Part shown: in pieces, positions 15,687 through 64,000 of the stretch
Layout: every line of letters begins with the position of its first letter
Numbering within the stretch: position 1 is the first letter of the stretch
Assembly: GCA_021613535.1 (NCBI GenBank)
Contig: CP075493.1
Span: 15,872,001 to 15,936,000 of the forward strand
Source of the DNA: Adineta vaga
Taxonomy: Eukaryota; Animalia; Rotifera
DNA: 64,000 nucleotides
Reading direction: 5' to 3'
Notes under the pieces: generated by a model
Told to the model about the DNA's origin: nothing
Database searches by the model: none
Seen by the model: the letters and a program-made list of their open reading frames with translations, nothing else
Position numbers and translations under genes: made by a program

Positions 15687-18141
15687 TCAAAATATTTATC
15701 TGTCAATTGGCTTAGTAATGAAGTTAAAAAACTTTACCTACCTGGCTTTATAAAAAAGCCTATAATTATAACCTTTTTATGCTTAATGATGATGAATATG
15801 TTGATGATGATAACAGTAATGATTTTGTTCAAGGTCTAGCTATTATTCTTGAACATCAAAAATACAAAACTTGGTTATATGTTATTCTTCTCACAGGTAT
15901 ATAACTCAAACCGAAAAGTCAAGTTCATCTATATTGACCTATTGAGATTGTAAGATATAAGTGAGAATATGAGAGAAACACTCATCCTAAACCATCAAAA
16001 TCATCATTTGTTAATTTCTTTATTTTAGTATGTTTCTATATTTTATTCGGCATAACTTTGATGGCAACCAAATCGAGAGAAGCTGTTATATACAATACAA
16101 CACCTGATACTTTCGAACAACTGTATAATAAACATGGTGAAATTCTTTCATGTCCATGTTCAAGAACATCAGTACCTTATCGAAATTTTACTTCGAATAA
16201 TGTGACAATGTATCCTATTTGTTTGAGTAATTTTACTAGTGAAGAATGGATTCAAGCATTATATTTTGAAAATGCAAGTCAATATGGAGTTTGGGATTTT
16301 CGAGCAACAGCATATTCACAAGTTAGTTAAAAACTTCTAGTTCAATTGTTTTATTTTTCTTTTTTAGTTTAAATTATTATCTAGTCTTTGTTCAATTTCA
16401 AAAGAAATCATTTTTCAAACACAAATTGATATTGATAGAAATGAACTTGTTACTTTTTATCTTGTTGATCAAAAACAAATGCAAATGGAAATAAATGAAA
16501 CAATTGAATTTTTTAAAAAGAGCGCATTTTCTCGAATAACATCTTATTTAACTTTTTTAACAAATACAATTCAAACAAGTTTTTTAGTTTCAGCTCTAAA
16601 TACAAATTTCCTGATTATAACTCTAGTTCTTGATCCTCGATATATACCAATAGAAGCACATGAAGTAACAGATGGTTTCAATAAATGTAGTACCAAAACA
16701 GTAGTAACTGCTGCTACTCTCAGTTCAATTGATTATGAATCATTTCCTTCTCGACATAGATTTGACATGAAGCCCATGCCGAATTCTAACATCGTCAATG
16801 GATTCTTTACAGGATGTACTCCAATTGAAGCTCTTCTTCAAAGTACATTAAATTGTTTATACGAAACAAAATGTCTTCAATTATTACTTGATTATTTTCT
16901 AATTCTTCAACAAGTTTGTGTAGAAGAAGAAGAAGTTAATAAATATATATGTCGCAAGGTTTGTTTCTATTTAGATAAATTTTAATCCCAATAATTCAAT
17001 TTTACCTTCGAACAATGGAAATCTTACTGTGAATGAATATTTAAATAATGTTTTCGTTCGAAATTGGTCAACTGTTATCGATTATAAAAAATATTTTTAT
17101 GAATGTTCTCCATCATTATGTACATATTCAATGATAGATCGAACAGAATTATATTATGCAATCACTCTTTTCATTAGTCTTTATGGTGGTCTCACGATTA
17201 TACTTCATCTTATTGCATCATGCTCAATTGATATTTTTATGAAATGGAAATTTTATTCAAAAAAACAAAATAAACAATCAAGTAGAGCTTTGATCAGATA
17301 AATTATAGTTCATTATAATTGATTATTTTTAGTTAAACGACAAAGATCTAGTATAAAAAAATTTATTCATAAAATGAAACAATTAAATCTGTTCAAGAAT
17401 GTCAATGACCGATTAGAAAAAAGTATTATACAACAAAAGATAATTACACTTGTCTATATAATATTATTATTCGGTAGAGTTATTATATCGTTGTATTAAA
17501 TAGTCATTTATATGTTTTCTTTTAATCTTATAATAGGTTCAATCTGTACTCTTTATTTATGCACATCATTGAATAGTGAAACTATGACAATAACTGTGAC
17601 AGATACGTCAATGGCAACTTACAATTCCTTAAATGTTTTATATTCTAAAACAGTTCGATGTCCATGTTCTAATAAAGTAATACTATATCAAAGATTTGTT
17701 ACATTATCTGCACGTTTTCATCAATTATGTTCGAGTGATTTCACCAATCTTAATTGGATTTATTTATTGAGAGATATTAACAACATGAGAATCCATAATG
17801 ATTGGCGTAATCGTGCAGCTACACAATTTCAATTATTATCTGATCTTTGTAGAATAGCTAATACAATGATTAATGATGCTGTACAACGATATCTTTCACA
17901 GTTGTTTATTGTTTCTTTTGTTATAAATGAAAATGATTTCAATAAACAAATTAAAACCAGTCTCAAACAGTTTTATCAATCAACAGGTTACAATTTCGGT
18001 CTGTTGACAAATATCTTGCAACTATTGTTGCAAGTTGATCAACTGTATACAGGAGTAATGTTAGCAGCTGGGATGCAACAGGAGATCAATTTAATACCAA
18101 ATAAAATAACAACTGACATACATACAACTAATCTATTCACG
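15687..18141 (+). CDS. Multi-exon 2-TM Cys-rich ectodomain family gene (one full unit plus part of a second); apparently truncated by the downstream transposon cluster
   Basis: KTWLYVILL TM1, CPCSRTSVPY, DFR, GFFTGCTPIEALLQSTLNCLY, ECSPSLCTY, ISLYGGL TM2, then a second LNLF...CPCS..FHQLCSSDF; several GT-AG introns. No continuation found after 18141. Confidence 0.75.
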
Positions 18142-18242
18142 GTATGTCACTGTAAGCGAAATACTTTTACGTAGATCAATAATTCGAGGTTTTGACGAAT
18201 AATAAGCGAAATTAATCAGAATAATTAATGAAACGTTAGCTT

Positions 18243-24162: not shown

Positions 24163-25743
24163 ATTGCTCTGTGTTACTTATTAAATTAAGTTTCAGTTAA
24201 GAACAAAATAATAATCTATTTTTTATTGATGTATATTTGTACTTTCCTGCCAATTGTATTCAAATGTGAAAATTTTTTCGGGAAATAAACAGTTTATGAA
24301 TAGAAATATTGATATAAGCTAAACACGATTTGCGTTAGGAAAAGTTAACTTTTAATTATGTTCTAATTTTCTAAACATAAATGGGAATTTCTATTTTTTC
24401 CCATCGGAATTGAAATGGGAAAAGAATTTGTTTCCGTAAAACACTATTCATAACACACATTTGCTTTTTTATTTCACAAGTGAATATTTCTTTCTTGTAT
24501 AAACATTTATTATCAAGATTGATAATGACATAAGTTTTATCATTGAACATTTTATTTGTTTATCTCTCTCTTTTTAATTAGTTTCTTTATTATAGTTGAA
24601 GTTTATAATAAAAGATGAATAAACAACAAACATATTATTTTCTCAGAAATGATGTTTCTTTTTGTATTTGACTTACATATTCAAATACATTTTTTCATAT
24701 AGACAATTTTTCTCCTTCTGTCATTCATAAAATACGTAATAATAATTGTTGTCGTTTATTGATTTAAACGTTATATATATGTTGATATTATGAAACTCTA
24801 ATAGGAATTCATGTATCGTTTCATATACAATACTGATGAAAACAAAACAACTTCATATCAACTATTTTAAATATATGAACAACGCGATCATTTTTTATGT
24901 ATTGTAATTAGTGTAAAACGAGCTATTATTAGAAAATTTCTTACTAATTTAAAATACATACAAAATATTATCTTTTGGTATGTATAGTTTTTCTTTTGAC
25001 AAAATAGAATATTATTGCTAACAGCATATAGTAAGAGGAGAATCTTACACACCGATACCCTCCGTTTAAGTTCGTTATCTGTTTGTGAGTATAGGATTTG
25101 TAGTATAGATCAATGTCACAAAAGGGTTCTTACTATTAGTATATTGTTATTGAATTACTGTATTTCTATTACATATCTTTGCAGGACAATGATGCAAAAC
25201 AATTATAGAATAATTCAGTTTCTTCTGAGATAACAAAATGTCGATGAGTGATCTATCTTTTTAGATAGAAAAAAGAACATTTGTATATTAAGTGACATTT
25301 GCTCCATAAGTAATTTATATCTTATTCTAAGATTTTAAAATAATTTTCTTTTTGTCGCAGCAATTTCCGTAATATTTATAAGAAATAGGATAAAAGAAAA
25401 CTGTGTATATACTTTGCTGCATGTTCCTTGAAAATCATTAATAACGCCACATAAGAAATATTGTCATTGGATGTATAGGCACTTCTTCTTTTTCTTTTCT
25501 TATTTACTAAACTCTCAACATCATTTTTTCATTTAAAACGTCATCATATTGAATGTAGGCCGTATTTTACCTCGTAAGAATGTGTTTCGATAATGGAGAG
25601 TAGTATCTTTGAAATAAATAATCTTTTTTTGTGTTTATTTGTTGTGGATAAACCACAGCTAACGAAGAAAACTTGATAAATTTTCGAGAAGAAAAGAATT
25701 CTGTTAATTAGTTCTTTTTGTATGACGTTCTTAGAAAAGAAAC

Positions 25744-28700
25744 ATGCATATTGATCTTAGGCAGTTGTGGCAAAAACTGCGACTCACTATTGAGCAGTTC
25801 AATATATTTCCATCAATTCCACCAACAGAAGATCAACACAAACTTCGTAATCAACACATTTCAACAAGATTATTCATTATTCTTTTCATTCTTTCATTAA
25901 CTATTCTTCTTCTTTATACAGCATTAATTGATGTTACACAAACTGTCACAGTCAATTCACCAACAATGAAACAATATTTACAATTATATTCCACATATTC
26001 AGAATCATTATCATGTAATTGTAAACGAATATCGATGAATTATAATAAAATTCTTCATTTGGAATATAGATTTCATCAAATATGTTACAGTATCTTTATT
26101 AATCAAACGTGGATTGATTATCTTACAAGTGCGTCACCGTCAATACTACTGTACGGTAATGGATTTCAAGAGAACAGTTTCTATATGTTTCAATTTTTAC
26201 AAGCATTTTGTGATTTGAGTTTTCAAACGATCGAGAATAGTTTGAGTGAATTCTATTCAACTCAATATATCAGTCCATCTGTTCTCCCTCCAGAACTATT
26301 TCAACTTCAAATTCAATCACTCATCAATAAATTCATTTCATCAACAACCAATAATTTTTTATTGTCGCTTTCAACAACACGACAAATGATTCAAAGCAAC
26401 ACTTTGTTAACTGCAACACAAGGAAACTTTGCTCTATATGTAGATCGAACTTACTTTATAGCTGCAGGATTAAATGTGTACGGCAACTGCAGTTGTGGAA
26501 CTTCGGCTAAATGTGCAAAGCCATCTCCAATTTATCTTGGTCAGACTGGAACAGTATTATTTACTGTACCAGGTATGTATGTTGGATGTTATCCTGTTGA
26601 ATCATTATTACAATCAGATCTTCGATGTTTTTATAATCAAACATGTATAAATACATTACAGTTGTATCTGAATGCATCATCATCAATGAATGTTACAGCT
26701 CTAGATTCATCTATATTCACTGCATTCATGGTGAATTCGAGAGTAGAAGATATCGTTAACAATCTAATGGTTGAAAAATGGATTCAATCGATGATGTATG
26801 AAAATTATCATAGAGAATGTAGAACATCACAATGTATTTATATACATAAAACAAAGAATAGTTTGATTTATATCATAACAACAATCGTCGGATTAATTGG
26901 AGGTTTAGTTACAGCGTTAAAATTGATTGTGCCTCGTGTGGTGGCTTTAGTAAGAAGAAAACGACGCATGGCAACACCAGAATCAGGTAAAGTATAAAAA
27001 GACTTCGCTCTCATTTTATACATTGTGATAATCATAGCACACTAAAATTTTTTGAAAGAGCGATATTCTGACTTCGAGAACAGTTGAAAGTTATTTCGCA
27101 TGAACATTTGTCAAAAACATGTTTTTGTGATTTCTATGTAGTGATCTTTCAAGTATGTGAGTGAAAAGTAAGTTTCATGATTTTTGGGTTAACTGTTCTT
27201 TCCTAAGATGAGTATTGCCATACATCCATGAATATTGAGATGTAAGCATTTCTGTACCAAAAGATGCATATCTTTCGCGGAAGATATGAGTGTGTTTTTA
27301 AAACTGATCATAGCTAAACTATTGATTCTGTGACGAAGTTGTTCTTGGTCTGACTGGATTACTGAAAGGATACATAGCTACGCCAGTAGTACGAAGCTGT
27401 GCGAAGTAAGACAGCTTGAAATTATTATCACTTTAACTTCCCACTAAATGAATCAATATGTCGACTGCGACGTTTAAAATTTCATACCAGTTTTTTAGTG
27501 AAATTACTCTCGCAATTCGGCCACTCGTCTAATGGTTTTTTCAAGTTCGAATATGATGCTACTGTCACATATGTGCACGCACAACACATAATGGGCAACT
27601 TTCGTATGCCAGATGGACATGTAGTTTCTTTCCTTGAAAATGGGTTCCTATATCTTAGAAATGATCATATATCACTTAGAATATCATCTTAAATGAAATA
27701 AATCATGTTCGAAAAAACAAATTCTTCGTATAAAAATACCTGCAGGGGACCTCAGCTAAAACTTTCGAAAAAAATGTTTTGTTAAAAAGTACGTGTTGTT
27801 GCATATTATTTAATGCAGTTTTCTGCGCTGATTCAAAATATCACCTTGCTTTTTTGCTAAGATGCTATTTTCAGGCAAAAATAGGCGATCACTATTTTTT
27901 TAAAGTTTTTCCTGAGTACACGTCGAAAACAAAATCCGAAAGAACCCTTTTTCATTACATATGGTTAAATGCAGTTTAATGAGCTAATTTCGAATATCAC
28001 ATTAGTTTTGCGTGAAAATGTTCTCATCTTCTCAAACGTAGCCATTTCGAGGCAGAAACCTGATTTTTTGTGAGACCTCTAGCTCGGCCTGTGTCCACTA
28101 ATGTAACTTTGTGCTATGACCAACGATAAACTATACATAGGAGAATGTTTGGTAAAAATTTGAGCTCAATCGGATAAAAACTCTTTGTAACGCTGTCAAA
28201 ATACAGTATGACCTATTTTTTGACCTAGTATGGGTCCAATAATCACTTTTTTTCTATTTCATTTTTGTTTCAATCGAAATAATTTTTTATGCAATATAAC
28301 TTATGGGTCAATCGTTCGTTTCATATAGTTTTTCTTTTTATAATCTTTAGACAAGTTGAGAAAAAGACCGGTTTCCGTACCATTACCGACTTATGAGCAA
28401 TTTTTGAGGATGGGCTTTTTTCGGGGTATGCCTTGATTTCTGGAAATCTAGTTTTAGGGTGAGACAAACTAACCATAGATGTATTTATTCCATTATTTGA
28501 ACTTTGAAAAATAGAACTTTCGATCATGTCCGCCTGGTTGCCCAGTGTGCAACAGCTCTTTTTCGTTGTGATGAAAAATTTCTTTAAATTTCGTCAGAGA
28601 GCAGTGGTTGCTGGTTCGCCACGTAGCTACAACAATTCCTTCAAACGAGAAACAGCCAATGGGAAAAAGTAGGACATCTGAACTTCTGAAGTACATGAGT

Positions 28701-31700
28701 CTGCTATTTCTTCCTCTCATAAATAGTATCATTCTGATACAAAACACACGCTTATATACTGATCCATCAACAGAAGGGAACGAAAGAGAATATCATAAAG
28801 TATGTTAGAATGTACACAAATAAGGATATATGGATAATCGAAGAGGGCAAATAGCATGCGTACAGCGCATGTAAGCTAGATCGTCACAATAATGAATGCC
28901 AACGATTTCTACGCGTAATTCGTTTTTCTTTGTATTTTAAAGAATCACTTGATCATGAAACTCGACCTCGCATTAGTCAAATAATCAAAAATAACGTAAA
29001 CACATTAAATATATTTCCATCAATTCCACCAACAGAAGATCAACACAAACTTCGTAATCAACACATTTCAACAAGATTATTCATTATTCTTTTCATTCTT
29101 TCGTTAACTATTCTTCTTCTTTATACAGCATTAATTGATGTTACACAAACTGTCACAGTCAATTCACCAACAATGAAACAATATTTACAATTATATTCCA
29201 CATATTCAGAATCATTATCATGTAATTGTAAACGAATATCGATGAATTATAATAAAATTCTTCATTTGGAATATAGATTTCATCAAATATGTTACAGTAT
29301 CTTTATTAATCAAACATGGATTGATTATCTTGAACTCGCACAGGCAGCCACAGGAATATACAGTTCTGACTTTAGAGTTAGTAGTTTATATATTTTTCAA
29401 AACTTTCACACATTTTGTGACTTGAGTTTTCAAACGATCGAGAATAGTTTGAGTGAATTCTATTCAACTCAATATATCAGCCCATCTGTTCTCCCTTCAG
29501 AACTATTTCAACTTCAAATTCAATCACTCATTAACCAATTCATTTCATCAACAACCAGTACTTTTTTATTATCACTTTCAACAACAAGACAAATGATTCA
29601 CAGTAATGCTATCTTAACTGCAACTCAAACGAACTTTGATCTTCATGTGATGCTAGGCTACTATATAATTTCAGCACCAGTTGTGTATGGCAACTGCACT
29701 TGTACAGCTTCGGCTAAATGTGCAAAGCCATCTCCAATTTATCTTGGTCAGACTGGAACAGTATTATTTACTGTACCAGGTATGTATGTTGGATGTTATC
29801 CTGTTGAATCATTATTACAATCGGATCTTCGATGTTTTTATAATCAAACATGTATAAATACATTACAGTTGTATCTGAATGCATCATCACCAATGAATGT
29901 TACAGCTCTAGATTCATCTATATTCACTGCATTTATGGTGAATTCGAGAGTAGAAGATATTGTTAACAATCTAATGGTTGAAAAATGGATTCAATCGATG
30001 ATGTATGAAAATTATTATAATGAATGTAGTACAACACAATGTATTTATATACATAAAACAAAGAATAGTTTGATTTATATCATAACAACAATCGTCGGAT
30101 TAATTGGAGGTTTAGTTACAGCGTTAAAATTGATTGTGCCTCGTGTGGTGGCTTTAGTAAGAAGAAAACGACGAACGGCGACACCAGAACCAGGTAAGAG
30201 CCCAACAAGACAAATATAACTAGAAGGTGTTGTAAGGGTGTGGATAACTTCTGCGGAATTTAATCCAAAGTGGCGATTTTACTGATGATCTCTCAATTAG
30301 GGTGACAATAGAAATTTTCTTCTCATTTTATTAAGATCGAGATTATCGAAAAAGAAACATTGTTGAGCTCACTACTAAATGATATTGTTTTTTAAAATAG
30401 GCACTGCTGTTATAATATAAGCAATAAAAAGTTCGTGTTCACAAGGAATAATTTTAGTTGAACAACTAATTCTTCGCAAAAACTATAGCGAAATCCTATG
30501 ATAAGATAGCGGAAACGATTCTTTCTATACAAAATAAGATGATGAAAGTGACGAAACAATTTTTCATCTGCTCATTCTGTAAAAGTTTTGTTATCTTCGG
30601 AAAGTTTGTTCAATCAATTTCTTTTGTACACTTTCGCATTATAGACTTTCCTCTTTTCAACAACAAAATGTTGAGTCTTGCCCCATCCGTTAAAGCCTTC
30701 TTGATGGTAATCAGAGTACCTCCGCTAGTATATTTATGTAAAAAAGACTCAGGAACTTCCATCTCACTCCACAATAATGATCTCTACATTTCACTACATA
30801 AATAAAGTACTCTTGAATCATCCATATCCTCACAGTCTTCCAGCCTAATATTCTTAGTCTCAGTATCTCTTTGTTGTTCTTAGAAAGAAACATGCATATT
30901 GATCTTAGGCAGTTGTGGCAAAAACTGCGACTCACTATTGAGCAGTTCAATATATTTCCATCAATTCCACCAACAGAAGATCAACACAAACTTCGTAATC
31001 AACACATTTCAACAAGATTATTCATTATTCTTTTCATTCTTTCATTAACTATTCTTCTTCTTTATACAGCATTAATTGATGTTACACAAACTGTCACAGT
31101 CAATTCACCAACAATGAAACAATATTTACAATTATATTCCACATATTCAGAATCATTATCATGTAATTGTAAACGAATATCGATGAATTATAATAAAATT
31201 CTTCATTTGGAATATAGATTTCATCAAATATGTTACAGTATCTTTATTAATCAAACATGGATTGATTATCTTACAAGTGCTCGGCCAGCTACGGGAATGT
31301 ACAGTGATGATTTTCGAGGTATCAGTTTATATATTTTTCAAAACTTTCACACATTTTGTGACTTGAGTTTTCAAACGATCGAGAATAGTTTGAGTGAATT
31401 CTATTCAACTCAATATATCAGTCCATCTGTTGTTCGTCCAGAACTATTTCAACTTCAAATTCAATCACTCATCAATAAATTCATTTCATCAACAACCAGT
31501 ACTTTTTTATTATCTATTTCCTTAATACAACAAATGATTTACAGTAACGTTTTGTTAACCGCAACAGTAGCGAACTTTGCACTTTATGTGCTCCCAAATG
31601 GCGCTGTAATTCCATTAGCACTCGTATACGACGACTGTAGTTGTAAAACGTCCGCTAAATGTATAATGCCATCTTCGATCTTTATTGATCAGAGCCGAAC

Positions 31701-32169
31701 AGTATTATTTACTGTACCAGGTATGTATGTTGGATGTTATCCTGTTGAATCATTATTACAATCGGATCTTCGATGTTTCTATAACCAAACATGTATAAAT
31801 ACATTACAGTTGTATCTGAATGCATCATCACCAATGAATGTTACAGCTCTAGATTCATCTATATTAGCTGCATTTATGGTGAATTCGAGAGTAGAAGATA
31901 TTGTTAACAATCTAATGGTTGAAAAATGGATTCAATCGATGATGTATGAAAATTATTATAATGAATGTAGTACAACACAATGTATTTATATACATAAAAC
32001 AAAGAATATTTTGATTTATATCATAACAACAACGGTCGGATTAACTGGAGGTTTAGTTACAGCGTTAAAATTGATTGTGCCACGATTTGTTGCGTTTATT
32101 GGTTTTTGTATTAGAAAATACAAGATGAAATACAATCATAATCAAGTGTTACCCATCGTCGAAAGCTAA
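25744..32169 (+). CDS. ~1259-aa membrane protein of three tandem TM-Cys-rich ectodomain-TM units (exons 25744-26986, 28943-30193, 30884-32169)
   Basis: Phase-1 donors TCAG|GTAAAG and CCAG|GTAAGA join acceptors TTTTAAAG|AA and TTCTTAG|AA in frame; 1243+1251+1286=3780 nt. AATAAA follows unit 3. An acceptor-like site at 25734 leaves room for an upstream exon. Confidence 0.85.
27587..28549. mobile_element. Non-autonomous Transib-like element (963 bp) with asymmetric TIRs and 5-bp TSD
   Basis: TSD CAACA at 27582-27586 and 28550-28554. Left end CATAATGGGCAAC; right end (reverse complement) CACACTGGGCAAC; second shared motif CCAGRYGGACATG. Confidence 0.8.
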
Positions 32170-32522: not shown

Positions 32523-34049
32523 ATTTTTTTAATTAAGAGGAAACACTATTAGTATTAAATAGTATATCAAAGATTTTCTCTCACACTTTTTTTTGTGTTA
32601 TGTACTGAATTAGAAAAATGTTAACGAATACTATTTATACGTATTTCAAATGCATATTGTGATCCACATGATTTTATAATTTCACAACACACCTTCAAAA
32701 ACAGATATAGTTTATTAGGGTTGATAAAATTCTGAACTACTAGTACTTTAAACAGCAGCATTGTGAGCTCCACCTATAACAAGTACGTTTTCTATTTGAT
32801 AGTATCGATTGCCAGTCATATTACGAGTACTATACCATTCTTTCTTTTCTTCACCTAAAACTCAATAATTTTCAATATGTTCTATTTTTCTTTGTTTTAT
32901 TATGAGCATCTCATGCAGATGTATATTTTGATGATAGTGATAGTATGTTGGCCGATTATATGTTCATTTGCTACTACTACACCTCGTTTGGATGCACAAC
33001 GAGATGAATTTTGTCTTCGTCGTCCAACAAATGATATTTTGATAGATGTTTTTTCTTCATACTATTTATTCTTGTGTAAAAAAACATGATTTTTATTAAT
33101 ATTGTATTACGCACCAAAAATCTAAAAAATATAGGTCAATGCAGAGTAATATCATTCGCTGATGGTCCATTATTAACTCTCTTAGTTTTTCATTAAAAGA
33201 TAGTTTGTGATAGTAATCATGGAAATTAGAAATGAAATTTCAAGATATTACACAATAGCATTCACCTAATGAACTGCGTAATAAAATAAAAACAGCATTT
33301 TAAACTTCATCATTATAATAAGATATTATTGAATGATATTGAATTCAAACAACACATGCTATAAGAAGAATTGTTAGAACTTATAGAAATTTTGGTTATT
33401 AAATCATTTTATTCAACTAGAAAAACGTCAAGTTATTTATTGAATTAACCCTTTAGATTTAAGATAAAAATATTTATATTTACGGAAACTTTTCTTTTCT
33501 CTTCAAGGTATAATGAAGGTAAATTTAGGATTTATTAAAAAGAGAGTTGCAGCCGAAAATCAATTAAAGTTAAATCTGTTCTGAAGAAAAACAATATTCA
33601 GAATTTTCATATACATAAATAATTGTTTCACGTTTGTATGAAACAGGTTAAATAAAATATTAATAAAGAACTATGAATTTCATCTACTGTATAAATATTT
33701 GTCAAAGAATAAATAAATGACTAAATTTTCCGATAGATATATATTTCTATTTTTATTACTTTATTATTATGTTCTATTATAATCGGATCATATATAATTG
33801 ATATTTTAATTCTGAACAAATTATACAAAATTGCATATAGACAGTAAACAATATAATGTTAAACAAAGTTTCCATACTTTTACTAAATAAAAATCATATA
33901 AAATCTGTAAAGAACTGCATCTTTTCTAATAAAAACAAGTGATGCATTAATTCAAAATGTAATTATGTATCCGTATGATTTTTTTCTGAAGAAAAAAAAT
34001 GTTATTTCAGTTCATTTTCTTTTAAATGTACTAACGTAGACAAGAAGAG

Positions 34050-34994
34050 ATGTCAAACTTAACAGTTACATTGGATATAATTCGAGATCGAATAACATCG
34101 ATTATTCTTCCTTTATATATTGTTCTTGGTATTCTTGGAAATGCATTTTGTATTTTTTATTTCTTGCAAAGATCTCAACGTTCCAGTTCATGTGCATTTT
34201 ATCTTTTACTTGTTGCAATTACAAATATATTTACAGTCACATTTGGTATTACAGCAACTCTTGTTGATTTTTGGAATCCAATGTCATCAAAAATTCTTCT
34301 TTATTGTAAATTACGCATCTATATCAATCATACATTATTATTAATTGGAAGAATCTTTACAGTTTTGGCTTCAATTGATACATTTACAATGACTTCACAA
34401 AAACATACTTGTCGAATGTTTAGTCAACGATCGAATGCAATTAAATATTCTATCGGTGTTGTTATCTGTTGTCCTTTAATTGCTATTCATATACCAATTG
34501 TGCTTACAAGTGTTTCTGGACAATGTATAATGCCTGGTGTATATTCATTAATATTTACAATCTATCAAATGATAATTGCTGGTATTATACCACCATTAGC
34601 AATGATTATATTTAATTGTCTTGCACATGTTAATATGAAAAGATCAGCAATACAACAGAATAATATAATAAAACGAGAACAACAACGACAACATTTACGT
34701 ATGGTAACAACTCAAATTATTATTTATATTATTTCAGCTGAACTTGTACCACTTACTAAAGTTTATTCACAATTAACAACAAATATCAAAGAAAAAAGTC
34801 AAGATCGAAAAGCTATTGAAGCATTTATTACATTTATGGCAAATAGTTTTCTTTTATATCTTAACACATGGACAGCTTTTTTTATTTACTATGGAACATC
34901 TTCTAATTTTCGAAATGCTTTTCTTCGAATTTTCAAAAAGAACATCAATCAAATTCAACCAGCACATATACTAGCGATTAATCACAATACCTGA
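34050..34994 (+). CDS. Class A (rhodopsin-like) GPCR, intronless
   Basis: 314 aa, seven hydrophobic segments, GILGN in TM1, CKLR, ASIDTF (DRY variant), FFIY...FR helix 8. Confidence 0.9.
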   Translation: MSNLTVTLDIIRDRITSIILPLYIVLGILGNAFCIFYFLQRSQRSSSCAFYLLLVAITNIFTVTFGITATLVDFWNPMSSKILLYCKLRIYINHTLLLIGRIFTVLASIDTFTMTSQKHTCRMFSQRSNAIKYSIGVVICCPLIAIHIPIVLTSVSGQCIMPGVYSLIFTIYQMIIAGIIPPLAMIIFNCLAHVNMKRSAIQQNNIIKREQQRQHLRMVTTQIIIYIISAELVPLTKVYSQLTTNIKEKSQDRKAIEAFITFMANSFLLYLNTWTAFFIYYGTSSNFRNAFLRIFKKNINQIQPAHILAINHNT

Positions 34995-35207: not shown

Positions 35208-36450
35208 TTAGGTTGTCAACAAAGTTCTGTCGTTTTTTTCTAAAATCTTGTAGAACAACCAAGAAAGTTCTAGAAGTTTCCATACTAAGGGTATATATAT
35301 AGGACATGAATGTCTTTTGAATGATAAAAAAAATCGTTGATATGGACGTTGATGTCGAGTCAAAGATAAATCTTTCTCATAGAGAGGTTCGAGTGCTTTT
35401 ACTTCATGAATTTCGTTTGGGGAACAAAGCAACGGAAGCAGCCAGCAACATATGCGGCACGATGGGTCAGGGTCTAGTCTCTACTCGTACCGCGCAACGT
35501 TGGTTCAATCATTGCAAGAATCGCGATTTAGAACTCGACGACTTACCTCGATCTGGTAGACCAATGGAAGTGGATGTGGACTTTTTAAAGCAGCTTATCG
35601 AAGAAGATCCTCGACTGACTTTACGGTGTTTAGCAGAGCAGCTCGGGTGCTCTCATACTACGGTGGAAAAACATCTGAACGAATTAGGCAAGACCTGGAA
35701 ATATGGGGTATGGATACCTCATGAATTATCGGCACATCAGCTGCAACAGAGAGTTGATGCATGTATGGATTTAATCACATCTCACCGCAACTACCAATGG
35801 TTATCCAATCTGATTACTGGTGAGGAGAAGTGGGTGTTGTATGTTAACTACACGCGTCGACGTCAGTGGCTGAGCGCTGGTCAAACCGGCGTAGCAACAC
35901 CGAAGGCTGATCTCCATCCCAAGAAATTGATGCTGAGCGTCTGGTGGGGTATCAAAGGAGTTATCCACTGGGAAGTTCTACCAAATGGTTACACCATCAC
36001 TGCTGATCTGTACTGTCAACAATTGGATCGGGTTGCAGAAAAGCTCAAGGGAAAGCAGGATCGAGTTTATTTTTTACATGACAACGCTAGACCACATGTA
36101 GCAAAGTCGACCCGTGAAAAATTATTGAAGCTCGGCTGGATTACTATTCCTCATCCACCTTATTCCCCTGACTTGGCTCCAACAGACTACCATTTGTTTC
36201 GATCTCTTTCGAATGATTTACGTGATAAAAAGTTCGACGAAGAAAGCGATGTCAAAACGGAGCTTGTCAAGTTCTTTGATGAAAAATCCCAGGACTTCTA
36301 CGAGCGCGGGATCATGTCTCTGCCAGAGCGTTGGCAACAAGTGGTAGATAGTAATGGTAAATATATATCTGAAAACTAGTTGTACTTTTGAAGTGAAAAA
36401 ACAATAATAAAATTTTTGAAAAAAACGCCAAAACTTTGTTGACAACCTAA
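35208..36450 (+). mobile_element. Full-length mariner element (1243 bp) with TA TSD
   Basis: TIR TTAGGTTGTCAACAAAGTT(C/T)TG(T/G)CGTTTTTTTC at both ends; TA at 35206-35207 and 36451-36452. Confidence 0.97.
35321..36379 (+). CDS. Mariner transposase; first catalytic Asp replaced by Glu
   Basis: HTH region, WIPHEL, ITGEEKW (normally TGDEKW), HDNARPH, YSPDLAPTDY. Confidence 0.93.
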   Translation: MIKKIVDMDVDVESKINLSHREVRVLLLHEFRLGNKATEAASNICGTMGQGLVSTRTAQRWFNHCKNRDLELDDLPRSGRPMEVDVDFLKQLIEEDPRLTLRCLAEQLGCSHTTVEKHLNELGKTWKYGVWIPHELSAHQLQQRVDACMDLITSHRNYQWLSNLITGEEKWVLYVNYTRRRQWLSAGQTGVATPKADLHPKKLMLSVWWGIKGVIHWEVLPNGYTITADLYCQQLDRVAEKLKGKQDRVYFLHDNARPHVAKSTREKLLKLGWITIPHPPYSPDLAPTDYHLFRSLSNDLRDKKFDEESDVKTELVKFFDEKSQDFYERGIMSLPERWQQVVDSNGKYISEN

Positions 36451-36519: not shown

Positions 36520-37277
36520 TACTTTTTTTTTATTATCTATTTCCTTAATACAACAAATGATTTACAGTAATGTTTTGTTAACTGCAACAGTAGCAAACTT
36601 TGCACTTTATGTGCTCCCAAATGGCGCTGTAATTCCATTAGCACTCGTATACGACGACTGTAGTTGTAAAACGTCCGCTAAATGTATAATGCCATCTTCG
36701 ATCTTTATTGATCAGAGCCGAACAGTATTATTTACTGTACCAGGTATGTATGTTGGATGTTATCCTGTTGAATCATTATTACAATCGGATCTTCGATGTT
36801 TCTATAACCAAACATGTATAAATACATTACAGTTGTATCTGAATGCATCATCACCAATGAATGTTACAGCTCTAGATTCATCTATATTAGCTGCATTTAT
36901 GGTGAATTCGAGAGTAGAAGATATCGTTAACAATCTAATGGTTGAAAAATGGATTCAATCGATGATGTATGAAAATTATTATAATGAATGTAGTACAACA
37001 CAATGTATTTATATACATAAAACAAAGAATATTTTGATTTATATCATAACAACAACGGTCGGATTAACTGGAGGTTTAGTTACAGCGTTAAAATTGATTG
37101 TGCCACGATTTGTTGCGTTTATTGGTTTTTGTATTAGAAAATACAAGATGAAATACAATCATAATCAAGTGTTACCCATCGTCGAAAGCTAATTCTTACA
37201 ATATTCATACGACAAAACAACATAAGAATCATGAATAAACATCGGTTTGATATATTATTTGTTTGCTTTTCATTTTT
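36520..37277 (+). pseudogene. Orphan duplicate of the 3' half of unit 3 (about 31500-32253) including stop and 3' UTR
   Basis: 211 aa identical to the end of ORF 30871-32169; by eye four silent substitutions and a longer T-run; lacks TM1. Confidence 0.9.
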
Positions 37278-37330: not shown

Positions 37331-40300
37331 CTAGTCAGTTCTAGTCGATGTAATTGCTATCGATGAAATTGATGGTTTAAATCCTACGAAATTCGATACC
37401 CATCGACCAATACTTGTTGCATACCATTCTGTTGAATAAAATGACGAAGGTAAAACATACAATAGAAAACTAGTTAATTGAGGAAGAAATGAAAAGAAAT
37501 AAGATACGATTAACAGATATCTTATCCAACTATTTTCCAAATTTTGACAATATAATGTAAATGGAATAATAAAAAGTGGTAAGGAAAATAATTGTGGAAC
37601 TAAAGTTATTCCAGGTCCAATAACTGATTCTTTATTTTCATTCAATACTTGTAAAATAAAATGAAAACGATTTTGAAATTTCATTAAAATCGATTGATTT
37701 GATTGAATAATATTTTTTCGAGCCTTAATCTTATTTCTTGCTACTATAAAACTAATAATAATTGTCGAAAGAAAAGTAATTATTAATGGTAAAATCGAAT
37801 TAATTATCGATACAATCGAATGATACAATTTCCATATTGATCGATACTGATTAGGAAATTCCATTACACACATTGCATCATTCGTATTCATTACTTCCAT
37901 TAACGATTTAACAAAAATAAATTCATGAAAATGACTACCTAAAATACCGACCATTGTAATGATCATTAAACGACGAGCAATCTGTGGTTTTCTAAGCCAT
38001 TGTTTATTAAGAAAAAGTGTCATATAAACACGTTCAATTGCAATCAATGATGAAAGCCAATATACAATTCGACTTGATGATATAAGAAAATAATTGAATA
38101 TTTTACATAAATAATGATTAATTTCAATTGAAGAATAAAATCCAATGATATTTATTGCTAAATGTAATAATCGAACAGTAAGAAATGTTAGATTTAATTG
38201 ATTAACAATACTCATAGAGAATAAATATTGTCCGATACCATTTCGAAGAGAATTTTTTCGACGAAAAGTTACAAAAGAAAAAACATTATTTAGTATTCCT
38301 AATAAAAACAATAATATCGAAATACTAATGAGAAATCGAAATATAAATATTGGATTATTTGAATTGAAATTCGTATAAAAAAGTTGATCTAATGTAAATA
38401 TAAATAAATTGGAATTAAATTGACATTTTCTTCCGAAATAACATTTTGGACATAAACAAAGAAAATTGTTCGTATCCTTTAAACATATTCCATTGGATAA
38501 ACAATAAGAACATTGATTAAGATGAAAATCATATTGAAAACATTGAATTTGCGTATGATTTTCATTACAAATACATAAATAATGTTCGTCATAGAAACAA
38601 AATAAATTTGTCGAATTTTCACATAAAAATTGATATTTTATTGGTGAAATTTGTTTTTGTCGAATAGACATACAACGAGTTTCATCATTCAATTGAGTTA
38701 TACCATCAATTGATTGAATATCAATTTGAACAGAAATAACATAAAGTTCAGGTAAAATTTTCTCGGAATATAATTTAACTACAACAATTTCTGGTATTGT
38801 ACCATGTTGATGTTCATATTCAATTGAATTCGGAAGAATTCGATAGATTTTTTGATAAACAAGATTTAAATTTAATGAAATAAAATCAATATCAAAATAT
38901 TGTACAACAGCTGCTAAATGATTCATTGTTTCATTAATGAATAATTTCGTTTCTGGTTTTCGAAATTGACATTTATTACCATGATATTTATCTGTACATA
39001 TACAAGCACTTGATTCAGGTTTTGATGTTGAAAAACATGAACCATTATTTAGACAAGGATTTGATTGACATCGATCATGTTCAATAAAACATCGTTCACC
39101 ATATCGATTAAATGAACAAATACAATAAGGTAAATGATTTCCAATTAATAAACCACGATATCCAGGTTGACATAGAGATCCATACGAACAATAACCATTC
39201 AGACATTGTTCATCTTTCAATGAACAATTTTCACCAGTAAAATTTGCTTTACAAAGACAAATGTACTGTGATTTTTCATTGAGAATTGCTTGACAAACTT
39301 GATTTTGATGACATGGATTACTTGAACATGGATTATCTTCTTGTTTAGGAAATCGTAAAATTTTCGTTAAACGTAAAACAGGTAAATAATCAAAATAAAT
39401 CGGATATTTCCATACAGCGAAGAGTTTTGGTTGATCGAAATCACTTTTTTCATACATTTCAATACGAATTGAATAAGGAGGATAATCATTTGAATAATTT
39501 AAATAACGTTCAAATTTATATTGAAGAAATTGTTTCGAATGAGAATATAAATAATGAGCGAACTTTTTTGAATAAGTCAATAATTCTGATACAACTCGAG
39601 CATGAAAAAAATAATTTGTAAGAATTTCATTTTTAAACATGAATAATATAACGATTTTAAATACAAGATTAATATCATTTGTCATCGAATAAATTGATTC
39701 AGAAAGATTAAGATGAAAAAGTAAACTTATACGATCACTATGATATTGACATTTGTCACCATAATATTGTGGAGGACAAAAACAAATGATTGATCGATTG
39801 TGAAAATAAACACCAATACCACGATTACACCAATAAGCAATTGGATCTGTATGATTTAAAGATAATGTTGATGGTTTTGTTGTTGAAATACTTGAAGTTA
39901 TCGATAATGTTAGATTTGAATCGATTGGAAATTGAATTAATTGAAATTTTTTATAGGAATTTTTCATAATAATTTCTTTTTCTTCACGATATTGAAATCT
40001 TGTTAATTGTAAAATATGTTGATATTCACACATATATTCATCTTCACCAAAATCACAATCAAATATTTGATTACATCGACCATTTCTTATACAATTTCCA
40101 TTAAAACAAACTGCATCATAAATTCGTTCACAGAATGAAATATTTAGTCGATAGTTACACCAAAAATCATCATCGGAAGAATTTTTACATCGTTCTCCAA
40201 AGCAATGATTCCAATAGGGAATACATTGTTTATTCGATTGACATTTATAATTATATCCAAGCATAGTTTGTTGATTACAATGTAAAATATTATTACGTTC

Positions 40301-42238
40301 ATCAATTGCTCCATAACAATCAATAATTTCATTACCAATTTGACTCCAATTAATACATGAAAACTTCTTTTGATTTGTAAAACAAGCAAATTCTGTTGTT
40401 TTATTACATAGTGTTGAATATGGTACTAATTGATTGAATGAATTTTTTTCATCAGATGCATCAGCACAATCCCATTGATTATCAAATAACCATTTCTTAT
40501 CAATACATTGTCCATTATCACATTGCCATTGCTCATCCAAACATTTCCACCATTGTCTACATTCAGTTACATTTTCATCTTGTCTCAAAGGTAAATTCCA
40601 AAATGTATCACAATAATATCGAAATGGAATATGTATTTGTTCAGAAACTTGATTAATTTCATTTTCAAACCATGATTTTTCAATATATTGTCGAAGAAGA
40701 TAACAATGATCTTTTTTTTGATAATTACAATTCATATCCGATAATTTTCTACTTGTACCTAACCAATATTCATCGAATGTATTATGACAATCAGAATAGG
40801 AATTACCAAGAAGAATTATACTTAAACAAGTTATCTCATCTGATGAACAACGAAAACAATATCGAGATATTTTTGAAAAGGAAATATTTGTTTGTTCATC
40901 GATTTGATCAATATTATTTAACGATTTATTTTGTGTCCATTGACAAATGAAATTTTCGATTTGATGAAGTTTAGTTAAAAATGAAATAGTCTTAGCGAGA
41001 ATATCAATTAATATACCATGACATTTGATTGTTCCATTAATAAGAAGAAAATCTGGTCGTAATTTATAATATTTTGGATAGAAAAAGAAAATATATGGAG
41101 CCATAATTCCTATTTTAGAAAATTGAATCGAATTTGAATGACAAATAGATGTTAATTGTTCAGTACAAAACGTATTTTCTTCTCCACATGGACAATCAAC
41201 ATGAACAGCTCCAGATAAATCACAAAGAAGAATAAATCGACATTGATCTTCTACTGTTAGATTACTCATTTTTGTTTGATTATATCCATATTTTTCATAA
41301 CATCGTCCATTAGGTAATGTCCACATATCATTGATATAATGTGTTTCACAAAGGAAAGCTTGTTCACGTTTACTTTGACATTCGGATTTAAATTGTGATA
41401 TGATTTGAAAATCAAATCGATCAATAATACATTGTCCATCACCACATGAATATTGATTTGGTGGACAAATTCGATCATCACATGGAATATAAATTCCATC
41501 AGTTGAACATTTGATATCATCATAAAATTGTATTTCATCACTCCAATCTAAACAATCAAATTCTCCATCGAGAAAATATTCATCAGGAATACACATTCCA
41601 TTCATACATTGATATTCATCATTTTCACATTTATTCGATTTTAATTCATTGCAATTTTCTTCATCAAATCCAAACATACATTGTTGAATACCATCACATA
41701 TATCTCGCCAATCTAAACATAATAAACCGTAATTACAGTTCAATGTTCGATAACAAATTATATCGCCATAGAATTGAACATAATGAGAATTATTTAGTTT
41801 TAAATTATTTTCAGCATAAAATGTATCGGTTAATGTTCTTCCTATTGGTAATAAATATTTGCAATTTTTACCAAATGATTGTAAATTAATACATTTACAT
41901 ATATATCCGTTGAATTCATCGATTGGATTTGTTAGAAATCGAATATAGTCTTCAACTTTTTCGATACTTGATTTCCATTGATGTAAAACAGTACTAATAC
42001 TAATATTCATTTTCTGAAGATTAGCAAATGAATAGAGCGTTCCATTATGATAACAATGTTGTGTATCATTACTTCTATTCAAAATAATGGGTTCGATTGG
42101 ACGACGACAAAATGGTAAACTTTTATGAAAAATACAATCATAAAATTCTACCGATGGACTATCGACAGTATTGTAAACATAGATTGTTAGATTAACATAT
42201 GGTAAAACGAATAGAATTAATTCTAATCGATTTCTCAT
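37331..42238 (-). CDS. LDL-receptor class A repeat + EGF-like + class A 7TM receptor, intronless, 1635 aa
   Basis: Multiple LDLa motifs (C.NG.CI....DG..DC.D.SDE), EGF motifs (CSSNPC, CLNNGSC) and a C-terminal 7TM with AIERV. Confidence 0.93.
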   Translation of the reverse strand: MRNRLELILFVLPYVNLTIYVYNTVDSPSVEFYDCIFHKSLPFCRRPIEPIILNRSNDTQHCYHNGTLYSFANLQKMNISISTVLHQWKSSIEKVEDYIRFLTNPIDEFNGYICKCINLQSFGKNCKYLLPIGRTLTDTFYAENNLKLNNSHYVQFYGDIICYRTLNCNYGLLCLDWRDICDGIQQCMFGFDEENCNELKSNKCENDEYQCMNGMCIPDEYFLDGEFDCLDWSDEIQFYDDIKCSTDGIYIPCDDRICPPNQYSCGDGQCIIDRFDFQIISQFKSECQSKREQAFLCETHYINDMWTLPNGRCYEKYGYNQTKMSNLTVEDQCRFILLCDLSGAVHVDCPCGEENTFCTEQLTSICHSNSIQFSKIGIMAPYIFFFYPKYYKLRPDFLLINGTIKCHGILIDILAKTISFLTKLHQIENFICQWTQNKSLNNIDQIDEQTNISFSKISRYCFRCSSDEITCLSIILLGNSYSDCHNTFDEYWLGTSRKLSDMNCNYQKKDHCYLLRQYIEKSWFENEINQVSEQIHIPFRYYCDTFWNLPLRQDENVTECRQWWKCLDEQWQCDNGQCIDKKWLFDNQWDCADASDEKNSFNQLVPYSTLCNKTTEFACFTNQKKFSCINWSQIGNEIIDCYGAIDERNNILHCNQQTMLGYNYKCQSNKQCIPYWNHCFGERCKNSSDDDFWCNYRLNISFCERIYDAVCFNGNCIRNGRCNQIFDCDFGEDEYMCEYQHILQLTRFQYREEKEIIMKNSYKKFQLIQFPIDSNLTLSITSSISTTKPSTLSLNHTDPIAYWCNRGIGVYFHNRSIICFCPPQYYGDKCQYHSDRISLLFHLNLSESIYSMTNDINLVFKIVILFMFKNEILTNYFFHARVVSELLTYSKKFAHYLYSHSKQFLQYKFERYLNYSNDYPPYSIRIEMYEKSDFDQPKLFAVWKYPIYFDYLPVLRLTKILRFPKQEDNPCSSNPCHQNQVCQAILNEKSQYICLCKANFTGENCSLKDEQCLNGYCSYGSLCQPGYRGLLIGNHLPYCICSFNRYGERCFIEHDRCQSNPCLNNGSCFSTSKPESSACICTDKYHGNKCQFRKPETKLFINETMNHLAAVVQYFDIDFISLNLNLVYQKIYRILPNSIEYEHQHGTIPEIVVVKLYSEKILPELYVISVQIDIQSIDGITQLNDETRCMSIRQKQISPIKYQFLCENSTNLFCFYDEHYLCICNENHTQIQCFQYDFHLNQCSYCLSNGICLKDTNNFLCLCPKCYFGRKCQFNSNLFIFTLDQLFYTNFNSNNPIFIFRFLISISILLFLLGILNNVFSFVTFRRKNSLRNGIGQYLFSMSIVNQLNLTFLTVRLLHLAINIIGFYSSIEINHYLCKIFNYFLISSSRIVYWLSSLIAIERVYMTLFLNKQWLRKPQIARRLMIITMVGILGSHFHEFIFVKSLMEVMNTNDAMCVMEFPNQYRSIWKLYHSIVSIINSILPLIITFLSTIIISFIVARNKIKARKNIIQSNQSILMKFQNRFHFILQVLNENKESVIGPGITLVPQLFSLPLFIIPFTLYCQNLENSWIRYLLIVSYFFSFLPQLTSFLLYVLPSSFYSTEWYATSIGRWVSNFVGFKPSISSIAITSTRTD

Positions 42239-55858: not shown

Positions 55859-56697
55859 TGTATGCTAAATTCTTAAAACAAAAACATTTTAATTATGCAA
55901 CACTTTTTCAAACAATACTTTCATATTTAATCAATTCATGACATTATAAGAGATTCTTTTTTCCTTATTAATTATATGATGAATACAAATACTAGGGAGT
56001 ATCACGTTTCTTTACAATGAACTACTTCAAGAAACTTCAAAAACAGATGAACGAATGGCATGTTTATAAAATGCTTTTTTTAGCGAGTTGAACAAAAATC
56101 GCTACGATTGAGATATTCTCTCTCCACTTTTATTCATTTGCTATATTAAGAATTAATTAATTGGTGGAGTTATGTCTAACGCTGACAACGATTGTGTTTT
56201 TTAATTAGAAGATTCTCATTTATTTAAAGCAAATCCATAAATAGCATTGTTTTCTTTCATCATTTTAATCTATTTATTTATACTGATACTAGTTGACCTG
56301 TTCAAATTAGGCAAAGCTAAATTTATCAATCTCTGAACATTCTACTAACAAAAAATATGCAAAATTAAATTCATTTAATATATTCTTTTTGAAATGATCT
56401 TTTGCGATGTTCTAAAATATAAGAGATGAATCTTTAAAATTAATTATATGTGTGTATGTATCAAATTCAGATACTCATTTGTGAAGATAATTAACTGTCA
56501 AGCACATAATTTTTTCTTCCGAAGGAAGTGTAGTCGAATTATTTGAGATATTTTTCTACCGGAAAATACGTCTAAGTAGAATATTGAGTATAAAATAAAA
56601 ATGAGCAGATGTCAGTCGAGAAGTATAACTCTATGTGACATTTGAAAATCATATAAGACATAATCATATAATTGTATTTAGATATATTTCTTATAGT

Positions 56698-57738
56698 ATG
56701 TCGTCATCAATTACCATTGTTATTAATCAATTAAATTCAGCAACAACAAACATTGTTCTTGTTTTGTTATGTGTTGCATTTGTATTCGGAATTATTGGTT
56801 TAATTCTCAATATCATCGTTTTTACACGGCCAAATTTACGTAATGAACCATGTTCATTTTATTTCTTATATGCAACATATTTTAATCTATTTTTCATTCT
56901 TATTATCATACCGGTACGTATTCTTTCAAATAGTTATAATATTGATTTAGCTTATTATAATCTTGGTATATGTAAAGTCGAATTTTTTGCTTTCTATTCA
57001 ATACGTACAATATCTTGTTGGTTAATTGCAATTGCATGTATTGATCGGTATTTACATAGTTCACATAATCCTAATATTCGACGAATAAGTTCATTGAAAA
57101 CAGCAAAAATAACGACTTTGATTGTTATTATTTTAATTCCTATATTATATAGTCATATGATTGTTTATATGACTATAAGATATACGGCTAATCAATTAGG
57201 AGATCGTTCACCTAATTGTAATTCAGACAATGCAATATATCGTTCATTTCTTGCTATATGGTATATGACTTTATATTCACTTAGTCCATCATTTTTAATG
57301 ATTTTTTTTGGTTTACTTACAATAAATAATATTCGACAACGTCGTCATGTAATTACAAGAATAACGAAAAATGATCGAATAAATCAACGTACAGAAAGAC
57401 AATTATTATATATGTTAGCTGCACAAGTATTTGTAATCATTTTTACTACTTTACCACAATCAATTAATCAACTTTATGTGACATTTACTGCAAATATAGT
57501 TAAAGATAAACTTCAACTTGCACAAGAAAATTTAGCTAGTAAAACTCTTGGAGGATTGACATTTTTCACTCATTCAAGTACTTTCTATTTATTTACAATG
57601 TCTGGTATTGTTTTTCGTAAAGAATTATACAAATTCTTTTCTTTTCGACGAAACCGTATTCATCAAGATGGCAATGACACACAGCATGTTTCTATTACGC
57701 TTAGAAATCGACGAACTAATAACATCTCTAAACAGTAA
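56698..57738 (+). CDS. Class A GPCR, intronless
   Basis: Seven hydrophobic segments, PCSFYF, CKV, CIDRY, LP in TM6, FYLF...FRKEL; likely ATG at 56698. Confidence 0.9.
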   Translation: MSSSITIVINQLNSATTNIVLVLLCVAFVFGIIGLILNIIVFTRPNLRNEPCSFYFLYATYFNLFFILIIIPVRILSNSYNIDLAYYNLGICKVEFFAFYSIRTISCWLIAIACIDRYLHSSHNPNIRRISSLKTAKITTLIVIILIPILYSHMIVYMTIRYTANQLGDRSPNCNSDNAIYRSFLAIWYMTLYSLSPSFLMIFFGLLTINNIRQRRHVITRITKNDRINQRTERQLLYMLAAQVFVIIFTTLPQSINQLYVTFTANIVKDKLQLAQENLASKTLGGLTFFTHSSTFYLFTMSGIVFRKELYKFFSFRRNRIHQDGNDTQHVSITLRNRRTNNISKQ

Positions 57739-63500: not shown

Positions 63501-64000
63501 ATGCAATTATCGAACGAAGTATTACAAAAACATATACAACACCTTCAATTATAAATTATGAATATTTATTAAGTATTTATTCTGAAAATGTTAATTGTCC
63601 ATGTACATATATTGCAATTCCTTATGATAAATTTATTACAGAATTACGTGTTAATACATTTCATCAAGTATGTTCATCCAATGTGGTATATTATGTTTTT
63701 CAATCAGGTATTTATTAAAATTAAATTTTCATATGTAATTAAGGATGAAAAGTATCGTATATCCAGTTTTAATTTTAACTTATATAATTGTAAGAAATCA
63801 ATCATTGTATATTTTTAGGTGATTCGTATCCTGCACGCAGATATTTGAGTGAAAATGATTTTCGAAATAATAAACTAATGTTTGTTAAAGTTCTCCGACA
63901 ACTTTGTACATTAGCACAAAAGACCGTTGAAGATAGTATTACAACATTTCTTATTTCGTCCATGTTTGTTAAACAAATGATCTCGTATGATCAATTTCAT
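60566..64000 (+). CDS. Divergent multi-unit 2-TM Cys-rich ectodomain protein, at least 3 units (exons 60566-63131, 63330-63707, 63819->64000); runs off the window
   Basis: Two complete units (LNL..TRI TM1, CPC, HQVCSS, DFR, C.P..C.Y, TM2) in one 857-aa ORF. The third unit follows phase-1 GT-AG introns (INLY..TRIY, CPCT, FHQVCSS, DFR). Confidence 0.88.

Follow-up and report, generated by a model that had tools for sequence, protein, structure and literature searches.

In a window of 64,000 nucleotides (nt) from the bdelloid rotifer Adineta vaga (contig CP075493.1, forward-strand positions 15,872,001 to 15,936,000; coordinates below are those of the window), three consecutive units, here called U1, U2 and U3, probably belong to a single three-exon gene whose scaffold is homogenised by conversion between the exons and in which two loops per module drift near-neutrally. 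The scaffold of the three modules has been homogenised by gene conversion among them, and the two hypervariable patches of each module, HV1 and HV2, represent older divergence that escaped this homogenisation. The window has a guanine-cytosine (GC) content of about 30%, and its top protein matches come from Adineta species, i.e., bdelloid rotifers. Relatives of the units were searched for in the genome (100.8 Mb in six contigs). The units correspond to three open reading frames (ORFs) on the same strand (U1, 25744-26997; U2, 28930-30219; U3, 30871-32169) with a unit size of about 1.25 kb each, and these ORFs encode the peptides that an earlier prediction for this stretch (hereafter the original prediction) had quoted. 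The three proteins are 82-84% identical, with the differences concentrated in HV1 and HV2. The features in question are the following, with silent divergence given as dS (synonymous differences per synonymous site).

25744..26986, forward strand: module U1, putative exon 1, with the ATG at 25744, 414 codons plus the first base of a split codon, and the donor TCAG/GTAAAG at 26986/26987
26987..28942, forward strand: proposed intron 1, 1956 nt, with no copy elsewhere in the genome apart from a 185-bp dispersed repeat at 28705-28891
28943..30193, forward strand: module U2, putative exon 2, with the acceptor ttttaaAG, the split codon G/AA, 416 full codons and the donor CCAG/GTAAGA
30194..30883, forward strand: proposed intron 2, 690 nt, single copy in the genome
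30884..32169, forward strand: module U3, putative exon 3, with the family's terminal-type tail (...NQVLPIVES) and a stop codon
25801..26106 in U1, 29008-29313 in U2 and 30949-31254 in U3, forward strand: framework segment B, codons 20-121, dS 0-0.016
26107..26214 in U1, 29314-29421 in U2 and 31255-31362 in U3, forward strand: HV1, dS 0.44-0.91, modelled as a loop with a predicted local distance difference test (pLDDT) score of about 58
26368..26553 in U1, 29575-29760 in U2 and 31516-31701 in U3, forward strand: HV2, dS 0.25-0.50, modelled as a hairpin, a loop and a strand

Read without splicing, U1 reaches a stop codon at 26995-26997. The head of U3 equals that of U1, including the ATG at 30892. 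Segment B spans the end of the predicted cytoplasmic head, membrane helix 1 and the proximal outer domain.

The DNA of the three units aligns without gaps from 25801 to about 26950 in U1, at offsets of +3207 for U2 and +5148 for U3, and the 5' and 3' flanks of the units are unrelated to one another. The original prediction described a scaffold that is near-identical down to its silent sites and is interrupted by two strongly differing patches, and both parts of this description hold: 25801-26106 is the same in all three units bar one silent site, HV1 is 64-83% and HV2 68-81% identical, and the remainder is 94-100% identical. The patchwork sharing that had been noticed among the units was likewise confirmed. 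U1 equals U3 at the 5' end (up to 25800) and again at 26125-26130, U2 equals U3 in the second half of HV1 (26134-26214), and U1 equals U2 at 26502-26548 and in the tail (from 26861 onward). Labels naming the odd one out among the units fall into 56 runs, compared with 84.6 +/- 5.2 expected (P<5e-5), and the longest run comprises 14 labels (P=5e-5); this runs test is insensitive to rate differences among sites. In the HV1 of U3, the first five informative sites are U1-like and those thereafter U2-like, and micro-conversion appears to be still going on inside the patches. Single-base differences between public runs of the species were seen at 26170, 26354, 29358 and 31599-31623, in or near the patches and in introns. 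They are strain or haplotype variants, and no new combination of HV patches was seen across the public A. vaga runs compared.

Silent sites date the two kinds of segment differently. Nei-Gojobori counts per segment gave a dS of 0-0.17 and a ratio of replacement to silent divergence (dN/dS, omega) of 0-0.55 for the framework of the trio, compared with the far higher dS of the patches listed above, where omega was 0.31-0.52 for HV1 and 0.77-0.85 for HV2. A second silent count used only codons that specify the same amino acid in both copies, which avoids path-averaging in codons with multiple hits. Silent differences affected 39 of 161 such codons in the patches (24%) and 23 of 769 in the framework (3%; Fisher 6e-17). 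The longest identical runs between units measure 212, 302 and 228 nt (P<=0.0002), as judged by a permutation in which the differences were re-dealt with weights taken from the between-gene variability of each site. The framework is thus young and the patches are old, which is the signature of gene conversion; silent-site contrast, identical runs and runs test all agree on the homogenised scaffold that had been proposed.

Upstream of their ATG, U1 (25726-25743) and U3 (30876-30891) carry the same acceptor-like sequence, ttcttAG plus 8-9 bases. Since the two units have this sequence in common, one conversion tract crosses the intron-exon border. Bdelloids make use of spliced-leader trans-splicing, and the acceptor-like site before the U1 and U3 ATG could be a site of leader addition. 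GC-biased conversion was considered and rejected. Over all family units examined (those of the window and loci L004-L030), GC content at third codon positions was lowest, at 0.14, in the most homogenised segment and 0.20-0.23 in the two patches; this trend is opposite to the expectation, and GC-biased conversion is therefore not evident.

The same profile recurs across the genome. We surveyed 29 units from ten arrays on three chromosomes, and in all ten arrays identity drops at HV1, recovers, drops again at HV2 and then shows a variable recovery. Nine of the ten arrays show about 90-100% identity over the first 100 codons, and in nine pairs the longest stretch without a difference stops at residues 117-127. 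Pooled dS values for the surveyed segments were as follows.

Segment B: within-array dS 0.085, between-array dS 0.83
HV1: within-array dS 0.70, between-array dS 1.27
Segment C: within-array dS 0.24, between-array dS 1.02
HV2: within-array dS 0.63, between-array dS 1.15
Segment D: within-array dS 0.29, between-array dS 0.94

The family to which these arrays belong is very large, with about 1,000 candidate module matches in A. vaga that place it among the largest families of this genome. It is unnamed and known mostly from rotifers. A profile search over 1.8 billion proteins returned 3,893 clusters, and annotated single-unit proteins of about 420 amino acids (aa) are present in Adineta species; the exact U1 and U3 protein sequences are absent from the protein collection. 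In the literature we found no description of the family or of its fixed three-module architecture, and a paper on Penelope-mediated family expansion (PMC3846280) deals with other families.

The original prediction treated the units as three separate receptor genes. The pattern of donors and tails, the missing start codon of U2 and the organisation of the genome in triplets favour one gene instead, and on these sequence signals U1, U2 and U3 are very probably three exons of one gene of 1,259 codons. Joins were checked exon by exon: both junctions are in frame with a split codon GAA each, and 414+1+416+1+427 codons give the 1,259. U2 has no in-frame ATG upstream of its first membrane helix, as is the case in many other units, and pyrimidine-rich acceptors lie directly before U2 and U3. 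In seven complete triplets, a phase-1 donor N/GTRA lies at the same tail codon in all 14 first and second units, and in none of eight third units. All eight third units have a different, longer hydrophobic tail that ends in a sequence like P-x-I-E/Q-S/T, and U3 does likewise (...LPIVES). An annotated three-module gene of another Adineta carries an intron at the same codon and in the same phase (TPES/E).

The triplet is also the prevailing arrangement of the family. Among the 100 best genomic unit matches there are 27 triplets, 5 pairs and 9 singles and no group of more than three units, and in many triplets the spacing of units is 1.26-1.35 kb, which leaves space for short introns only. A continuous three-unit frame of 1,260 aa is present in the A. 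vaga genome (contig C2, positions 1012958-1016647), and two library proteins on metagenome contigs are uninterrupted three-module ORFs. Among the 141 top library proteins, from which those of the first search were excluded, exactly three complete units are present in 55 (median 1,277 aa) and four in none. Neither bodies nor heads or tails revealed any positional orthology of modules between genes, which fits long-term concerted evolution.

Several points weigh against the reading as one concertedly evolving three-exon gene with neutral loops. We found no RNA run containing the stretch, and the introns rest on sequence signals and homology only. At 1956 and 690 nt, they are long compared with the short gaps between units in most triplets. 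The ATG of U3 lies nine bases past the acceptor and the same acceptor-like site precedes U1, so that U3 could be expressed alone, or an unspliced U1 could terminate at its own stop codon. Gene models in other species may have been built from the very signals used here. Repeated independent triplication, instead of an old three-module gene, retains some residual probability. In two divergent metagenomic three-module genes, DNA identity among the modules is no more than 45-56%; strong homogenisation is therefore a trait of the subfamily seen in A. vaga and not of all members. Finally, an omega of about 1 in short, saturated loops does not separate neutrality from a mixture of positive and purifying selection.

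The proposed introns themselves contain no Rfam family, no tandem repeats, no Pfam domain in their small ORFs and no notable terminal inverted repeats. A Transib-like reading of 27582-28554 was unsupported, and this stretch is single-copy. The 185-bp element at 28705-28891 in intron 1 is dispersed over all six contigs in at least 40 copies of 70-83% identity, lacks an Rfam match and was not found beside the other family genes retrieved; it may be a small non-autonomous mobile element. A second, distant family member lies at 60566-64000 on the forward strand (about 25% identity to U1). Two of its modules are fused in an 857-aa frame that ends in ...HGK with the same GK-type donor (G/GTAAGT), and the third module leaves the window; this layout agrees with the one-gene reading of U1, U2 and U3. 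At 1438-2424 and 15974-18156 (forward strand), weak and fragmented family matches of 29-38% identity, with their pieces in different frames, are probably decayed copies of the family.

HV1 and HV2 are variable far beyond this gene. In an alignment with 80 independent homologues, taken from metagenomes and other Adineta species, family entropy has two peaks, at residues 128-140 and 231-270, which coincide with HV1 and HV2, and it is twice as high at sites variable within the trio as at invariant ones (Mann-Whitney 1e-14). The proposal that selection keeps the patches different was not supported. Omega was 0.5-0.7 for the patches as a whole and reached 0.8-1.0 in their cores, with no value clearly above 1. 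Pooled across arrays, it was 0.80 in the HV1 core and 1.00 and 1.01 in the HV2 cores, compared with 0.39-0.46 in the framework, all by crude counting on short, saturated segments. The dN/dS above 1 that marks a repertoire under diversifying selection was not found in the HV patches. This means that they change near-neutrally: loop length is conserved, and replacements are not in excess. The data are also compatible with selection for three different loop sets in each protein, but do not require it.

The idea that loops are swapped survived in part. Within this gene it agrees with the micro-conversion described above; as a wider exchange it failed, since the genome search found no donor and no copy of any HV variant elsewhere, and the mosaic is therefore local and not a shuffle among many loci. 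The next-best genomic matches reach 70-81% identity and are confined to the segment between the patches. One further partial copy of the gene, not mentioned in the original prediction, lies within the window.

36526..37276, forward strand: U4, truncated 3' part of exon 3 plus 85 nt of 3' flank, recognised by its similarity to U3

Over the 734 bases compared, U4 and the corresponding part of U3 differ at 4, and the similarity runs 85 nt beyond the stop codon. U4 lies directly downstream of a transposase ORF of the mariner/Mos1 type (35321-36376, forward strand; Transposase_1, HTH_48), upstream of which a 319-aa ORF (34035-34991, forward strand) is without Pfam match.

The three modules exchange sequence by gene conversion, most likely between exons, and this has left most of the scaffold near-identical. 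Conversion is strongest across the first 100 codons, with tracts ending at HV1. The HV loops, probably only weakly constrained (omega near 1), would diverge and in doing so lose the homology needed for conversion, so that they would persist as self-maintaining islands because divergence removes what conversion requires.

An alternative that we consider unlikely is the one from which the original prediction had started, namely three separate tandem paralogous receptor genes with interlocus conversion of the scaffold and diversifying selection on ligand-contact loops. It would account for every unit being a complete open frame with a stop, for the ATG that U1 and U3 each possess, for the single-unit proteins of about 420 aa annotated in Adineta and for a strong conversion signal around loops that are the most variable parts of the family. 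It leaves U2 without an in-frame start, gives no reason for donors confined to first and second units (14/14 as against 0/8 in third units) and conflicts with the triplet organisation of the genome and the continuous three-module ORFs; nor does omega exceed 1, and the genome holds no HV donors elsewhere.

It is highly improbable that a very recent triplication was followed by mutation targeted to the two patches only, without conversion. A local mutator would fit the near-equal silent and replacement changes in the patches and the core omega of 0.8-1.0. However, blocks in which one unit is the odd one out also alternate across the framework, and flanks and introns are wholly unrelated, unlike those of a recent duplication. 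Within genes, dS is graded (0.085, 0.24 and 0.29 in segments B, C and D) rather than zero outside the patches, and one profile in ten genes of different ages fits recurrent conversion better. We found no repeat, template or RNA element near the patches.

Purifying selection alone, with a constrained framework and unconstrained loops, is scarcely credible. The framework omega of 0.35-0.46 does lie below that of the loops, and framework residues are conserved family-wide. Yet in the same segments silent sites are identical within a gene and diverged between genes (dS 0.83-1.02); since this identity exists within the gene only, constraint at the protein level is insufficient to explain it.

We give practically no credence to an assembly or polishing artefact in which identical stretches were collapsed or over-corrected: 300-bp identities in a 6-kb repeat cluster are a classic site of polishing errors, but contigs of four studies reproduce the HV variants, the unique introns and the U4 junction, framework contigs have the depth expected of three true copies, and nine other loci show the same profile. 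This check used Logan contigs, not raw long reads, from four independent studies (2013, 2015, 2021 and 2022), in which U1 HV1, U1 HV2 and U2 HV2 are reproduced with zero differences. The contigs also contain the unique sequence between units and the upstream junction of U4 (loose end at 31503), and the depth of the shared framework is 2.5-4x that of single-copy flanks. The contig loose ends at 29322 and 31110 were rejected as extra HV variants; they map to unrelated loci without similarity to the units. Two contig joints were also set aside, one (26648>30004) with one side of only 24 letters, which derives from another family member, and one (31696>29756) with an ambiguous placement between U3 and U4.

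Each module is predicted to consist of a short cytoplasmic head, a helix at residues 31-61, an outer domain of about 310 residues with several N-glycosylation sequons, a second helix at 374-410 and a basic tail. Twelve cysteines of the outer domain are invariant or nearly so. The models reached a pLDDT of 85.8 for the full module and, for the outer domain alone, a pLDDT of 89.5 and a predicted template modelling score (pTM) of 0.85. In the modelled outer domain, beta strands accompany two long antiparallel helices (141-172 and 183-218) that form a hairpin. HV1 is a loop of low confidence (130-140) just before helix 141-172, and HV2, which follows helix 183-218, consists of a beta-hairpin (229-243), a loop and a strand (258-265). 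From the order of these elements, not from coordinates, the two patches should lie at the same end of the helical hairpin. As judged from its sequence, the spliced product would have six membrane helices and three homologous outer domains on one chain, and we infer a cell-surface protein.

The fold resembled nothing that we searched. No Pfam hit of the three units rose above noise, the family profile had no relative among PDB sequences, and Foldseek and VIA-align returned no credible fold for either the full model or the outer domain. The outer domain alone reached a best Z of 4.3 with a Foldseek E>1, and the full model Z<=7.8 via its membrane helices only. Neighbours in the ESM Atlas were unnamed rotifer clusters and one weak ciliate lead, Y80K_N.

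Surface-receptor genes are abundant in the region. A 1,635-aa open frame at 37334-42238 on the reverse strand combines LDL-receptor class A repeats with a rhodopsin-type seven-helix domain, and another seven-helix receptor gene lies at 56629-57735 on the forward strand.

Bdelloid rotifers are the standard example of anciently asexual animals, and gene conversion is regarded as a major force on their genomes. Conversion becomes visible here at the scale of putative exons inside one gene, alike in ten of ten arrays and with borders at the same two loops, which offers a clean natural system for measuring how long tracts are, where homology becomes a barrier and how homogenisation is balanced against divergence. 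Receptor families are well known to show mosaic conversion from which variable patches escape. The novelty here is that the copies are probably exon-modules of one gene, fixed at a count of three and with the same borders in every gene examined, in a large unnamed family of no known fold.

A bolder reading, which we put forward tentatively and regard as rather doubtful, is that several hundred bdelloid genes may encode single-chain pseudo-trimers of three two-helix modules with an undescribed outer-domain fold, a family of covalently linked heterotrimeric receptors or channels for recognition in which conversion rather than sex shuffles the loop sets. Conversion within the gene would then keep the assembly scaffold (helix 1 and proximal domain) uniform, and each outer domain would keep its own pair of loops. 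Should the family prove to serve in recognition or as channels, it would add a new class to the surface proteins of animals.

The closest architectural parallels are the channels of the P2X, ASIC/ENaC/FaNaC and PAC/TMEM206 families, which share with each module an intracellular N-terminus, a helix, a cysteine-rich outer domain, a second helix and an intracellular C-terminus; three modules per chain would match the trimeric stoichiometry of P2X, ASIC/ENaC/FaNaC and PAC. The full model weakly matched FaNaC1 (Z 7.8, root-mean-square deviation (rmsd) 10.8, 78 residues) and PAC (Z 7.3, rmsd 2.9, 66 residues), in both cases over the membrane helices only and within the stated noise range of the tool. 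Unlike members of the P2X, ASIC/ENaC and PAC families, the modules have no Pfam or PDB sequence match and no match of the outer-domain fold. We know of no natural single-chain trimer in these families.

Cassette systems of antigenic variation and diversification, i.e., VSG, vlsE, pilE/pilS and the chicken pseudo-V genes, resemble the present gene in segmental conversion into a constant frame and in having a promoter-less partial copy (here U4) nearby. They differ in possessing an archive of silent cassettes, whereas here U4 is near-identical to U3 and no HV variants exist elsewhere, and there is no sign of programmed switching.

Concerted evolution with islands of divergence is established for the receptor families MHC class I/II, KIR, CEACAM and TLR1. 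The gene described here resembles them in its long tracts converted down to the silent sites, in flanks that are unrelated, in the mosaic of blocks shared among copies and in variable patches left out of the homogenisation. Unlike in those families, the exchanging copies appear as three exons of one gene, the patches are without an excess of dN over dS, and all genes examined have the same segment borders.

Concerted evolution also occurs in genes with internal repeats, such as polyubiquitin, the kringles of apolipoprotein(a) and the nebulin repeats. As in these, repeats inside a gene are homogenised by conversion or unequal exchange. In contrast to them, the copy number here is fixed at three, the repeat is a complete two-helix membrane module of about 415 residues, and homogenisation is regional, so that two loop segments in each module stay distinct.

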